A DNA stretch of 64,000 nt from Octopus sinensis (Eukaryota), in assembly GCF_006345805.1 (NCBI RefSeq), contig NC_043014.1:36518001-36582000 (forward strand), read 5' to 3'. Of this stretch, positions 1,187 to 50,862 are shown one piece after another (positions within the stretch are counted from its first letter, which is position 1; every line of letters starts with the position of its first letter). Below the pieces are notes generated by a model. It had not been told where the DNA came from. It ran no database searches and saw only the letters and a program-made list of their open reading frames with translations. The position numbers and the translations under genes are program-made.

Positions 1187-1523
1187 TTATTGAGATTGCA
1201 GATGTGTTTCCTTCAAGCAATATTGATTTTGCACACGCAACATTCTTAACTATAAAATGTCGGTATGATATAGAAAATCTTCTTATGTTTTTTCTCGTGC
1301 GAAATCACAGTGAAATTATTGTTGTTCGAATCAATTTTCAAAATTGAAGACACGAATTTTGAGGTAGTAACCAGTAGAAAGGGTTTTGACTGTACTATAC
1401 CTACATTACCTGTACGTAAGAAAGGTGTGATTACCTGCTCGAAACGTTATCCCTCTTGTGAGGATGCGACATACTACAAATGTTCAGCAAATAAAGAATC
1501 TTCAAAATCTAGAGTTGTAAGAG
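1187..1523 (+). pseudogene. Gene A, Ig-like domain 1 exon, with a 1-nt frameshift (pseudogenised allele or sequencing error)
   Basis: Acceptor ttttttttctatgcag|TT and donor AGA G|gtcagt. The first frame gives IEIADVFPSSNIDFAHATFLTIKCRYDIENLLMFFLVRNHSEIIVVRINFQN then TGA (1345-1347). The shifted frame gives EDTNFEVVTSRKGFDCTIPTLPVRKKGVITCSKRYPSCEDATYYKCSANKESSKSRVVR, with the Ig F-strand motif D-x-x-x-Y-x-C. Length is 337 nt (3n+1). It aligns end to end with the intact 324-nt paralog at 50539-50862. Confidence 0.8.
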
Positions 1524-1599
1524 GTCAGTTTACTCGTTCTATTTTTACTTCCGTTTCTTTTTTTGCACGTATTCAATTCCATTATCATTATTTTTATTT

Positions 1600-2010
1600 C
1601 TATTGTGTGTTTCTATTGCACTATCGAACACAAGTTTCATCCAGTCATGTCAATTGCCAAGGCCAGCCTGACTACCTCTCTCCATCACTCCCGATCTTCC
1701 ATTAGTGTTTTTAGGTCTTCAACTTGGCATCCAACATCTTCTGCAAGCTGTTGTATATATGTCTTCCGTGGTCTTCCAGTCGCTGTAGTACCGTGATTTC
1801 GTGCCCACAACAACTCGTTACTCACAAGTTCTTCTTTACTTCTCCAGCAATGGTCAGCAAAACCCAATGTCCGCTCTTAGATGATTGATGAGAAAGTTGA
1901 TACATTCCCATATAACCTTTGTTTAGTTGGGTGCTCCCTCCATTAAATGTTGGGCACTGCACGTAACATTCTGGTGTAGGTACCGTCCAGCATGCACTTA
2001 AGTCCCTCTC
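1600..2010 (-). mobile_element. RTE/RTEX-like LINE 3' fragment
   Basis: HCWRSKEELVSNELLW...GRPRKTYIQQLAEDVGC..EDL..LMEDRE is a typical LINE ORF2 C-terminus. Confidence 0.7.
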
Positions 2011-2568
2011 TTTCTTTTCTCTCTTTTACTTATTTCAGTCATTTGACAGCGGCCATGCTGGAGCACCGCCTTTAGTCGAGCAAATCAACACCGGGACTTA
2101 TTCTTTGTAAGCCCAGTACTTATTCTATTGGTCTCTTTTGTCGGACCGCCAAGTGCATGTCTGTATATGCATGCATGAATGTATGTAAATATGTTTGCGT
2201 ATGTGAATATATCTGTATCTATATATGTGTCCACATATTCATACATGCGCACACACACACATACATACACGCACACACGCAAATATATAATTGCACACAA
2301 ATACATGCTTATGTGTAAGTAAATATACACGTGTATGAATGTGTCATTCATTTGTTGTGGAGTTACTGCTAGTGACTTGGCCCCACACAGCCTTAGCACT
2401 GCTTACACAGTTAACCACTTCCAAGCAACAGTTCCCAAAGTCCAGGATTAACAATAATTGGAGTGTTGTCAAATGTTTTAGTTTAGTATGAAGATTGTAG
2501 TTTACATTAGTGAAACTACTCTTTGATTGTGAGGCCCTTTGTTCGAAGATAAGCATATTTCGATTCTC

Positions 2569-3009
2569 TTTACTCTTTTTACTCTTTTACTTGTTTCAGT
2601 CATTTGACTGCGGCCATGCTGGAGCACCGCATTTAGTCGAGCAAATCGACCCCGGGACTTATTCTTTTTAAGCCCAGTACATATTTTATCGGTCTCTTTT
2701 GCCGAACCGCTAAGTGACGGGGACGTAAATAAAACAGCATCGGTTGTCAAGCAATGCTAGGGGGACAAACCAACAACACACAACACACACACACACACAC
2801 ACACACACAACATATATATATATATATATATATATATATATATATATATATACGACAGGCTTCTTTCAGTTTCCGTCTACCAAATCCACTCACAAGGCAT
2901 TAGTCGGCCCGGGGCTATAGCAGAAGACACTTGCCCAAGATGCCACGCAGTGGGACTGAACCCCGAACCATGTGGTTGGTTAGCAAGCTACTTACTACAC
3001 AGCCACTCC
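2569..3009 (-). mobile_element. tRNA-derived octopus-type SINE (other copies about 31830-32268 -, 43150-43545 -, 49900-50272 -, 51490-51815 +)
   Basis: Head GGAGTGGCTGTGT-GTAAGTAGC...GGTTCAGTCCCAC (A/B boxes), internal (CA)/(TA) tract and AAGAGTA tail. Repeated several times in the window. Confidence 0.85.
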
Positions 3010-3043
3010 CTGGCCTATTCGTTTTTGTTTTTTTTCTTTTCAG

Positions 3044-47790: not shown

Positions 47791-48372
47791 GTGTATTTTA
47801 GAATACAATATATAAATGCCCACATACATATGCAATACCTGAATCTTTCTAACAAAAGAACAGAAAACTATACAAAGCGTTCATTTACTCGGATATACAG
47901 GTTGGTCGCTAAAAAAATAAGAAAACTTGACGTTTATTCTTTACCTTAAATAGATCTTCTGTAAATATAAATCAGCATTTCACGAACTTTTCGCTTTTCT
48001 AACGACTACCCTGTACGCGTAAAACCATCCGCTTCCACACAATGACACATGTATGAACACATATAATAAAAATATAGATGAATACAAATGCATTGAGACG
48101 TAACAGTAATTAACATATACGTATCAGGAAACCTCTTCAAGGCATTTCGGGTTGCGAGAAAAAGCTGTGAAATCTCCATTGTTTCATATATGCTGTCTTA
48201 AAAGTAATTTTACTATGCCTTAGAAACAGTCGTGATTGTCACAGTTGAAATGTCTTTGAGTACAGGTCTGCCCCATCGGATCTATCATCAAAACTTGAGA
48301 TTAAATAGCAGCAAAAACAACAAGAAAAAATAAAAGTGTTAATGAAGGCAACACAAAAAAAAACTTGCTTAC

Positions 48373-48678
48373 CTGTTGATTTGATGAGTAGTTTAGTGAG
48401 TGTTTCGCCGTTCAGAAAACATGTGATGTTTGTGAAATCGATGTCCGTTTGTTTTACAGTATAATTATGAAATGACACTACTGGACTTAGACAGTCGCGA
48501 GTAGGTCTAGTTTCTATTTTCTGTATATGCATATGTGTACCACGATATCCTCTTTCAAACCATAAAATGTCATTGATACCCGTAGGTGCAGCGATATATG
48601 CTACACATCTGAAGACCAGCGTCTTGTTCACTTCAATAGGTAGGTTAAGCACGTCCAGACTTTTCAAGAAAGATCTCG
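48373..48678 (-). CDS. Gene C, Ig-like domain 2 exon
   Basis: Acceptor ggttacttttcag|CG and donor ACA G|gtaagc. 306 nt, open: RSFLKSLDVLNLPIEVNKTLVFRCVAYIAAPTGINDILW...RDCLSP...DIDFTNITCFLNG. About 40/103 aa identical to gene A by manual count. Confidence 0.85.
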
Positions 48679-48989
48679 CTGAAAAGTAACCGAATCAAAA
48701 TATGTAAATCTTAGAACAAGAGGCATCACAATAATATATTAGGTGGTTTCATTAATATAAACTACAAATGTTATATGATACTAAACTATTCATAATGCAG
48801 GACCATGCGAACTGCTGATGCTAACTGTTCAACTATCTAACTTTATTTACATACACAATCATATATATAGATACATATATATTCAGAAACACCCCTGTAT
48901 ACGCACATATACATATATAAACACACGCGCGCGTGCACGCCCACACACTTTCACATTTACTCGCTCAACATATGTAAGTGGTTCAGAAT

Positions 48990-49890
48990 TTTGTTTTGCA
49001 ATCATGAGCTTCATCTGCCCATCTTCTCTGCCCATTATTTCTGGAAGAGTCGATAGGAACTTGCCGCTTTTGATCCTCTCAGAAGTAACCGTCACTAGAT
49101 TCTCCAGTAGGATTCCGAACCGTGACCAACTGAGATTGTGTACATTATGCAACCTTCCCGTTCGTAGCCTACGCCAAGATTTCATGCTGTTTGGCTCGTC
49201 TCGAAGAATCGTAAGTGTCTTTTCTACGACAGTCTAATTACTCGACCATAGCACCGGATCTATGACCTCACACTGCGGGGGAAAAGCGGCTGGATATTGA
49301 GAAAGTCCCTTATCTATAAGCTATGCACCCTGTCGAGTAACGTGACTTCAGATACCTCTCGGAGAAACCGGATTTCTGCCTTTTTAAATCACGGTCGTAC
49401 TCTTTCCATTATGGTCACTGAATGGAGTCACTACAGAGTGCTGCGAGACAGTGATGAGAATAAATGTTACAAAAACTGAGCCATTTCTTCTGTCAAGAAA
49501 GTATTCCCAATGCACTCTGTGTTAGTGGAAAATCACTGAAACAAATGGAAAAGATTAAATTTCCTGAGTTTGTATTAACGAGTGGTGAAAGGTAGGAGGA
49601 TTGACTGGATGGAAACTCGCTACCTTCAATATGGTTTCCGTGCCTATTCTCACTATGATTATAATGAAATATTTACTTCTATATACCACATATTAGTTCT
49701 AGGTGTATTGGCCAAATGCTTTCTCCCGTAACATCGATTCGAAAGTGTAAACTCAGTTTAATTCCAAAATTTGAAAATGCTTTTCACTCCTGATCAGGCG
49801 TATCACATAGACCTAAATCAACATTGAATGTTATCATCAAAAGACGATATCGAATTTATCATCTCGTATTATTTCGGAACTACTACTTCA
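48990..49890 (-). mobile_element. Old Expander/REX3-like RTE relic in the gene C domain1-domain2 intron
   Basis: ERVRP..KKAEIRFLREVSEVTLLDRVHS..IRDFLNI.PL motif. Confidence 0.7.
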
Positions 49891-50538
49891 TCATAAAAGG
49901 ACTTGTTCTCTTCCAGAATAATCCACGGGGGCGTAAACACACCAGCATCGGTTGTCAAGCGATGTTGGGGGGACAAACACAGACAAACACAAACACACAC
50001 ACACACACACACACACACACACACACACACATACACACACACAGATATATATATATATATATATATATATATATATATATATAATATATATATATATATA
50101 TACATATACATATATATGACGGGCTTCTTTCTGTTTCCGTCTACAAAATCCACTCACAAGGCTTTGATCGGCCCGAGGTTATAGTAGAAAACACTTGCCC
50201 TAGGTGCCATGCTGTGGGACTGACCCGGAACAATGTGGTTGGTAAACAAGCTACTTACTACACAGCCACTCCTGCGCCTATCATTAATTTTAGTTAGTAT
50301 TTCTTTTCTTATTGCATCAACTATCTTTAAGTCTATCTCACCCTACAGAAAATTGCGCAAACCGTTTCTATACACAGTGCGTACAGTACGTCCATTACAA
50401 CAGAAAATACAAAACCAAAAGGAAATATTGTGCATATCAAAGGCTATAAATCTGTGTTTAATAGTGCAGTAGAATCACGCAACAGAAATAAAATTAATGA
50501 CAGCTGAGTGAAGAAAGGAAAGAACTGATAAAACTGAC

Positions 50539-50862
50539 CTTTTAAAGTCTTAGGTTTTGAAGATTCGGTAGCTGATCTAAATGTATAGGTTGTCGCATCC
50601 TTGCATGTGGGATTAAATTTCCAGCAGATAATCTGACCTCTATAACCCAGAATTGAAGTGCAGTCGAAACCATTCCGCTGGATTTCTTTTTGAAAGGAAT
50701 TGAGGCTCCGAGAAAACTGAAATTTCAGAACTGCATTCTCGTTGTTCTGCATGAGAACAATCTCATCAAAATATCTCAGGCTATACCGACATGCTATAAC
50801 TAATGCAGTATTGTATCCAAAATCAATGATATCAGAAGGTGATACATATTCAATCTCAAAAA
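50539..50862 (-). CDS. Gene C, Ig-like domain 1 exon
   Basis: Acceptor ttttttttaaacag|TT and donor AAA G|gtcagt. 324 nt, open: FEIEYVSPSDIIDFGYNTALVIACRYSLRYFDEIVLMQNNENAVLKFQFSRSLNSFQKEIQRNGFDCTSILGYRGQIICWKFNPTCKDATTYTFRSATESSKPKTLK. Confidence 0.85.

Follow-up and report, generated by a model that had tools for sequence, protein, structure and literature searches.

A tandemly arrayed family of two-immunoglobulin-domain, probably GPI-anchored proteins in octopuses and argonauts

What is encoded by the short, widely spaced exons that lie on both strands of a 64,000-nucleotide (nt) stretch of Octopus sinensis DNA (hereinafter the window; Table 1), and do they belong to functioning genes or to the debris of duplication? 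An annotation made earlier from the letters of the window (hereinafter the sequence-only reading) had proposed two convergent four-exon genes, A and C, together with an additional exon copy, fragment B, as members of a hidden and rapidly duplicating family of cell-surface proteins with two immunoglobulin (Ig) domains and, probably, a glycosylphosphatidylinositol (GPI) anchor. We report here that gene C is intact and comprises five coding exons, and that these genes belong to a family that is new and unstudied although its proteins are of a very familiar kind, with at least 44 sequence clusters across Octopoda. To the reading that the window is the distal end of an octopod-specific tandem gene cluster we give a probability of about 0.62; gene A closes an A-type tandem array as its final unit and extends from before position 1 to 12136.

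Gene structure, fold and distribution of the family

The first coding exon of gene C, which encodes its signal peptide, was recovered by tblastn with the signal peptides of O. bimaculoides relatives (75% identity), whose N-terminus is MLLAMMILMMASY, and its letters were then read directly; it lies 13 kb upstream of the exon for Ig domain 1 with no other family exon between them. Spliced together, the five exons give a product of 265 amino acids (aa), while exons 1–4 of the sequence-only model yield 248 open codons. All eight exons of that model were re-derived at the same positions and lengths: acceptors in both genes consist of a pyrimidine tract followed by AG, donors are GT, and every intron is in phase 1. 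The placement of exons 3 and 4 is independent because the only alignable stretches between the regions downstream in A and C contain them. The four-exon models themselves needed revision, in that the exons are real and gene C is open, but the coding exons number five (the signal exon, outside the span first marked, had been missed) and exon 1 of gene A is broken. Fragment B was recovered as described, a copy of the 306-nt exon 2 with intact splice sites.

The best protein match of gene C is the RefSeq entry “uncharacterized protein LOC118766815” of O. sinensis (185 aa), which is gene C itself and is 100% identical over the Ig part. The description of the family as hidden therefore stands insofar as its members are badly annotated, but not literally, since gene C is present in RefSeq in truncated form and some relatives (e.g., A0A0L8FXF0) already carry the automatic label “Ig-like domain-containing.” The RefSeq model runs from an internal methionine (50752) through domain 2 and then reads 12 residues of exon 3 in another frame. 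A brute-force scan (43863-43899, 48370-48373) derived its C-terminus, GSKRAETTLGNS followed by a stop, only via TA/TC, AA/CC or AG/CA junctions; we rejected canonical splicing as its source, since no GT-AG junction yields that end. GTAAG occurs at the start of exon 3 as well as at the donor of exon 2, a repetition that may have misled the aligner. The canonical exon 3 junction runs into exon 4 and gives a C-terminus like that of O. bimaculoides LOC106880715 isoform X5. An alternative last exon for gene C was looked for in the window and not found.

Exon 2 of gene A matches exon 2 of gene C in tblastn (E=6e-21), and O. bimaculoides proteins match the window exons at E=1e-33 to 1e-36, both well in excess of chance similarity. 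Domain 1 bears the signature I-x-C-x-Y ... C-x-D-A-x-x-Y-x-C and lacks the tryptophan of strand C, and domain 2 shows FRC...LW...D.D..NITC in all members. The family motifs, GFDC...CWK.N..C.D...Y.C for domain 1 and F.C...W...C...S.Y...D...I.C for domain 2, are carried by gene C, gene A and fragment B, with E-values of 1e-113 to 1e-35 against members. Conserved cysteines number five in domain 1 and three in domain 2, both odd, and the extra ones pointed out in the sequence-only reading (FDC, I-x-C and P-x-C-x-D in domain 1; CLSP in domain 2) are present. The sequence taken for structure prediction was that of O. bimaculoides isoform X5, of the same architecture as gene C and 65% identical to it. 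AlphaFold2 with 29 family sequences gave a predicted local distance difference test score (pLDDT) of 88.8 and a predicted template modelling score (pTM) of 0.72, with five models in agreement, and showed two beta domains of seven to nine strands, after which come a linker of low confidence and a helix at the C-terminus. Foldseek recovered 746 matches in the Protein Data Bank (PDB) at E<=0.001, headed by butyrophilin ectodomains, CD4 D1D2 and Fab/TCR, a picture unchanged from that obtained with an earlier model built from 11 sequences (pLDDT 70.5). Comparison of the family profile with PDB sequences gave weak matches to Ig light chains (E=4e-4, from the F strand of the V domain into the constant domain) and to Fc-gamma receptor II (E ~0.04). 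Given the confident model, the Foldseek matches and the Ig-like sequence pattern, the reading of a variable-like (V-like) followed by a constant-like (C-like) Ig domain is well supported, in line with what the sequence-only reading had proposed.

A profile search retrieved 44 relatives at E<=0.001 among 1.84 billion representative proteins. Clusters were looked up for 30 of the 44: 25 are named, every one of them from O. sinensis, O. vulgaris, O. bimaculoides or Argonauta hians, and the other five are short Logan contigs that read through splice donors and are thus genomic. No relative from outside Octopoda occurred among the named matches of this search. A word-indexed homolog search with the family profile returned five members, all known already, and an exact-product look-up of two members (P0002 and P0005) matched no contig. 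Same-family proteins include LOC118766815, LOC106880715, LOC106880713, CAI9737731-38 and A0A0L8FXF0, and isoform X5 shows the same domain order and a near-identical tail. Relatives are arrayed in tandem: 29 kb of O. bimaculoides DNA hold three paralogs in head-to-tail order, and O. vulgaris has an A-type array with a period of ~27 kb, in which the region orthologous to the window (hereinafter L006) holds an intact ortholog of gene A. O. sinensis has additional members at 290 kb before the window (LOC118766814) and 65 kb after it (LOC118766816), so that the cluster extends over at least 450 kb. The O. vulgaris models CAI9737731-38 are several array units fused. A literature search by LOC, XP and UniProt identifiers found no mention of these genes, and a topical search gave general reviews only. 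The family thus appears, so far, to be an Ig-superfamily lineage specific to octopuses and argonauts; the earlier proposal of a lineage-specific, rapidly duplicating family fits the 25 of 25 named relatives from Octopus or Argonauta, the tandem arrays, and ratios of nonsynonymous to synonymous rates (dN/dS, omega) of about 1 or above.

Table 1. Features of the window, numbered from its first letter (strands relative to the window)
Feature	Position	Strand	Remarks
Window, Octopus sinensis GCA_006345805.1, CM016876.1	36,518,001-36,582,000 of CM016876.1	same strand	
Gene C signal exon (first coding)	63946..63994	-	ATG, MLLAMMMLMIAPYTSA (63994-63947), one further nt; phase-1 GTAAGT donor
Gene C Ig domain 1 exon	50539..50862	-	324 nt, open, phase 1 at both ends; V-like
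Gene C Ig domain 2 exon	48373..48678	-	306 nt; FRC...LW...ITC; extra cysteine (DCLSP); three N-x-S/T sequons
Gene C linker exon	43858..43896	-	39 nt; VSEQRQLWETANA
Gene C hydrophobic-tail exon	39420..39499	-	80 nt; EKLYNADIMTKIVTFATYMLFISNLR and TAA; putative GPI attachment signal
Gene A Ig domain 1 exon	1187..1523	+	337 nt; two frame-breaking indels
Gene A Ig domain 2 exon	3044..3349	+	306 nt, open
Gene A linker exon	9741..9773	+	33 nt; GTEQKAIRDNA
Gene A hydrophobic-tail exon	11184..11263	+	80 nt; DKLSDANIITKILKFAATLLVIGHFH and TAA; peptide identical in O. vulgaris copies
Gene A alternative last exon	12072..12136	+	hydrophilic end DKHSSSKSIRLLNIPCFHGRR, then stop; tblastn with the C-terminus of O. 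bimaculoides A0A0L8FXF0
Donor-like G/GTTAGT past exon 4 stop, gene A	11264-11302		
Donor-like G/GTTAGT past exon 4 stop, gene C	39419-39384		
Fragment B, orphan A-type exon 2 copy	32294..32599	+	306 nt, both splice sites kept
Duplication block with fragment B	31428..33294	+	1.9 kb, 93% identical to 2154-4031 of gene A
Inverted duplication, left arm	20878-30568	+	
Inverted duplication, right arm	63132-35665	-	
~520-bp repeat units	33498-35599		three direct and one inverted; central spacer
LINE-like fragment	6444-6980	-	
LINE-like fragments	12684-17596, 38352-38756, 54596-58018		
Adjoining ORFs in gene C intron 2	45417-46082, 46362-46739	+	221 and 125 aa; antisense to gene C
SINE-like element	2007-2155, 2555-3010, 31820-32260, 43139-43555, 49925-50308, 51489-51793		~300-450 bp, then (CA)n/(TA)n
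Low-complexity tract, gene A	835-1170		GAA/CTT-type
Low-complexity tract, gene C	50887-51478		GAA/CTT-type

Rates of evolution, membrane attachment and rival explanations

Rates were obtained as small-sample Nei–Gojobori estimates. Between species and subfamilies, omega in the Ig exons ranges from 0.7 to 1.25. Among close A-type copies, in which silent sites are unsaturated, domain 2 is nearly identical (dN 0.004-0.02), and in domain 1, 20-21 differences are nonsynonymous and 2 are synonymous (omega 2.7-2.8). Gene A and unit 1 of O. vulgaris differ at 15 nonsynonymous and 0 synonymous positions. Comparison of the intact domain-1 exons of three O. vulgaris A-type copies gave 21 variable codons with an amino acid replacement and 1 silent one. 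One-sided tests of the domain-1 excess gave p=0.02-0.1 (about 0.03-0.1 for the intact O. vulgaris pairs with omega 2.7-2.8), which is suggestive of, and does not prove, diversifying selection on this membrane-distal domain.

As to how the proteins are held at the cell surface, gene C has a signal peptide with a core of mean Kyte–Doolittle hydropathy 2.7 and T-S-A at -3 to -1 (judged by eye), which is conserved in O. bimaculoides and O. vulgaris. At the other end the proteins carry a hydrophobic run free of charged residues, which measures 14 residues in gene C and 11 in gene A (mean hydropathy 1.6-1.9) and has 0-1 residue after it. The best 19-residue hydropathy window in these tails reaches 1.1-1.4, against 3.7 in the family member P0022, which has a true transmembrane segment and a cytoplasmic tail; the tails probably resemble a GPI signal more closely than a transmembrane helix. 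By a home-made rule that seeks small residues at omega, omega+1 and omega+2 some 20-30 residues from the end, gene A offers S-D-A with 22 residues after it, which fits, and gene C offers as omega-site candidates the weak N-A-D, or A-N-A with 28 residues after it; the triplets S-D-A and N-A-D lie 21-22 residues from the end. GPI anchoring of the window proteins seems to us the better-favored outcome, by a modest degree, and the layout that the sequence-only reading had taken for that of a GPI signal (small residues followed by a terminal hydrophobic run) is there, together with the signal peptide and three sequons. The C-termini of the family vary, however, among a GPI-like tail, a transmembrane segment with a cytoplasmic tail, a mucin-like PTTT stalk and a hydrophilic end. 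The ectodomains could accordingly be genuine and yet carry no GPI anchor, the short hydrophobic end being instead a weak membrane anchor, a signal for retention or degradation, or part of a secreted protein. The weakness of the candidate sites in gene C favors this alternative, as do the transmembrane members with cytoplasmic tails (P0022 and P0038) and the models with hydrophilic ends (P0003 and P0009), whose existence makes membrane attachment variable within the family. Nevertheless, we regard it as unlikely: a run of 11-14 residues with 0-1 residue beyond it lacks the length and the hydrophobicity that a stable transmembrane helix requires, a short terminal run on a protein with a signal peptide is the classical layout of a GPI signal, and sister subfamilies possess textbook signals of small residues, spacer and hydrophobic end, the more distant members ending in classical GPI-type tails such as SGSGVQFSKWVLIINLILLLLDVAVSR. 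Moreover, the tail is the best-conserved segment between species, with 22 of 26 residues identical between O. sinensis and O. bimaculoides against 62-65% in the Ig domains.

The integrity of the genes raises two further alternatives, one confined to gene A and the other embracing the whole cluster. A length of 337 nt is incompatible with two flanking phase-1 introns, so exon 1 of gene A is not open in one frame: its first 51 codons lie in one frame, positions 1344-1356 in a second and the remainder in a third. Alignment to three intact 333-nt O. vulgaris copies, the positional ortholog included, revealed an in-frame insertion of 3 nt, 2 additional nt in the A run at 1340-1343, and the loss of 1 nt (G) between 1356 and 1357. 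A paralog-like “LKTR” of gene A is read in the third frame (1344-1356). An in-frame rescue or a mini-intron was rejected, as the homologous frame changes twice within 17 nt. With two frame shifts, gene A is unable to encode a full protein in the present assembly. Either it is a recently formed pseudogene or the assembly has two local errors at this place. The latter would leave gene A functional, both indels being long-read errors among 27-kb tandem repeats of 94-97% identity to which polishing reads had been mis-mapped. In keeping with this, the lesion at 1340-1343 is a change in the length of an A homopolymer, typical of long-read error, no other exon of gene A shows a broken frame or splice site, O. 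vulgaris has an intact gene at the orthologous position, and the surrounding tandem paralogs make polishing unreliable. Conversely, there are two separate lesions in 17 nt, the second of which, the loss of a G flanked by A and T runs, leaves homopolymer lengths unchanged; protein searches turned up no RefSeq or other O. sinensis protein for gene A; and its 5′ part (180-5211, exons 1-2) is unusually diverged, each O. vulgaris copy matching it at 93-94% identity, compared with 97% in the remainder (5303-19405, 97.2% to L006), which suggests gene conversion or accelerated change. We therefore hold a functional gene A to be a real but minority possibility. Far less probable, in our estimate, is that the entire cluster consists of decaying, functionless pseudo-exons carried along by segmental duplication, with the gene models as annotation artefacts. 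Such decay would account for the dN/dS of about 1 in many pairwise comparisons, the broken and partial copies (gene A and fragment B), the chimeric or truncated gene models in all three annotated genomes and the heavy transposon content around the exons. It is opposed by the retention across Octopus and Argonauta of frames, splice sites, signal peptide, structural cysteines, the domain-2 tryptophan and the tail, at synonymous divergence of up to ~0.4, and by the nonsynonymous excess in domain 1, which is not expected from neutral decay. Likewise, mismatches to gene A amount to 1.6% in exon B against ~5% (plus indels) in its flanks, so that even this orphan exon appears conserved or recently converted.

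Several observations nevertheless weigh against the account of a functional family of GPI-anchored two-Ig proteins that we prefer. The splicing of the 13-kb first intron of gene C and of its tail exon is predicted from homology and canonical sites. In domain 1 of gene C the canonical F-strand cysteine is replaced by phenylalanine (TYTF; relatives have TYTC), which leaves one cysteine of that domain unpaired, and with this loss gene C could itself be drifting. Its N-A-D candidate has an unfavourable aspartate at omega+2, and a lysine lies inside the tail. The modelled structure is that of a relative and not of a window protein; no Ig domain was recognized by Pfam in the spliced product of gene C or in the frame-joined product of gene A, and across 29 family members three matched Ig_2 at E>=0.017, below the gathering score. 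Finally, a dN/dS of about 1 in many comparisons fits weak constraint equally well.

A possible surface-recognition role and known systems

If gene C is expressed as predicted, its product would be a glycoprotein of ~265 aa in which signal peptide, V-like Ig domain, C-like Ig domain, short linker and hydrophobic peptide each occupy their own phase-1 exon. The signal peptide would direct it into the endoplasmic reticulum, where a GPI anchor would take the place of the last ~22 residues after cleavage at a small-residue site, namely S-D-A in gene A and N-A-D in gene C, with display of the two-Ig ectodomain on the outer leaflet of the membrane. Ligand would presumably be bound by the membrane-distal domain 1, which would be the part that diversifies among paralogs. 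A-type genes may additionally skip the tail exon in favor of the alternative last exon, which is also kept in O. vulgaris; joining to 12072-12136 in place of exon 4 would give a soluble isoform. A donor-like G/GTTAGT lies 36-38 nt past the exon 4 stop in both genes. Its conservation raises the possibility that exon 4 is an internal cassette exon, the inclusion of which would provide the hydrophobic tail and the skipping of which would provide a soluble end.

The most likely role is surface recognition between cells or between cell and ligand, in an immune, neural or sensory setting, with domain 1 as the variable binding face. More speculatively, and in our view improbably, the family might be a diversified recognition system invented by octopods: arrayed GPI-linked two-Ig receptors with a V-like domain under positive selection and extra conserved cysteines forming an interdomain or intermolecular disulfide, whose paralogs switch between GPI-anchored, transmembrane-signalling and soluble forms, and which would serve as a code for self/non-self, pathogen recognition, or neuronal or chemotactile identity. 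Were this true, it would parallel the octopus protocadherin expansion.

Among known systems, butyrophilin/B7 proteins (BTN3A1, BTN2A1) provide the best two-domain structural match (Foldseek E ~1e-6, TM 0.5-0.57), likewise with a V-like domain followed by a C-like one. Identity is 13-16% with no sequence homology detected, however; the window genes lack the transmembrane helix and B30.2 domain, and octopod domain 1 has three extra cysteines and domain 2 one. CD4 D1D2, another top structural match, is also a V-then-C two-Ig ectodomain. In the CD2 family, CD48 and CD58 combine a V with a C2 domain and are GPI-linked, and CD58 also has a transmembrane isoform; comparably, the octopod paralogs or isoforms seem to alternate a lipid anchor with other C-termini. 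CD4 and the CD2 family are vertebrate, however, with other cysteine patterns and no sequence relationship detected. Within molluscs, the FREPs of Biomphalaria are secreted lectins that join Ig-superfamily domains to a C-terminal fibrinogen domain. They resemble the octopod proteins as a lineage-restricted, multi-copy, diversifying Ig-superfamily family in a mollusc, but the octopod family has no fibrinogen domain. Dpr (two Ig domains) and IgLON (three) neuronal receptors are small ectodomains, GPI-anchored or predicted to be so, with many paralogs in which the N-terminal domain sets specificity, and in NCAM alternative splicing decides between GPI and transmembrane attachment (PMC10084454). 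The octopod family shares with Dpr and IgLON the expansion of small Ig-superfamily ectodomains into many paralogs. It is not a member of the Dpr/DIP/IgLON (“Wirin”) group, as the profile search found no relative outside Octopoda among its named matches, and neither the window proteins nor the 29 family members matched the Pfam I-set and Ig_3 models.

Cephalopods combine large nervous systems with an immunity that is purely innate, and for the most part the molecules of surface recognition on which these two systems rely are yet to be identified. Restriction to octopods, tandem arrays, quick evolution and an outer domain that outpaces silent sites make this family a cheap candidate to look for in the octopus expression atlases that exist for tissues and single cells. 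Its annotation (truncated in O. sinensis, fused into chimeras in O. vulgaris, and with no O. sinensis protein from the A-type array in our searches) is poor in all three public Octopus genomes, and expression studies that use those annotations would consequently under-count the family.

Fragment B and the setting of the window

A 26.9-kb O. sinensis locus retrieved for the best protein match agrees at 100% identity with 60752-33863 of the window, which places the window on CM016876.1. The window is AT-rich, with many microsatellites and with fragments of reverse transcriptase and endonuclease of the long interspersed nuclear element (LINE) type throughout. Genes A and C are convergent, and their relatives in O. 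bimaculoides stand in tandem on a single strand. The signal exon of gene A lies before position 1, its O. vulgaris counterpart being 7.6-8.5 kb upstream of exon 1. The window contains a collinear inverted duplication of eight blocks (91-98% identity), with the exons of gene C sitting in gaps of its right arm and with fragment B and the ~520-bp repeat units in its central spacer. Fragment B is a leftover exon 2 in this spacer; it differs from exon 2 of gene A at 5 of 306 nt, all five nonsynonymous, and tblastn and alignment found no exon 1, 3 or 4 belonging to it in the window. In the O. vulgaris region L006, the left arm holds on the (+) strand a C-type exon 4 and an alternative exon (44035-44106, 44302-44346) that are absent from the window. 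The region has clearly been reshaped by duplication and inversion, and probably by gene conversion as well.

LINE-like fragments (Pfam RVT_1, Exo_endo_phos_2 and zf-RVT) fill the space between genes A and C as well as the introns of both. A mobile-element origin of the exons was rejected, since the reverse-transcriptase fragments lie in introns or between genes and none in exons. Two adjoining open reading frames (ORFs) lie antisense within intron 2 of gene C, both without a Pfam match, the 221-aa one with a cysteine-rich N-terminus; the pair (45417-46739) may be a transposon remnant. Scans of the window for Rfam families, tRNAs and tandem repeats found nothing. An element resembling a short interspersed nuclear element (SINE), without a tRNA or Rfam match, occurs in several copies, and in gene A and fragment B it ends ~30 nt 5′ of the exon 2 acceptor, abutting the polypyrimidine tract. 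Directly 5′ of the domain-1 exon, genes A and C share a purine/pyrimidine low-complexity tract, which therefore predates their split.

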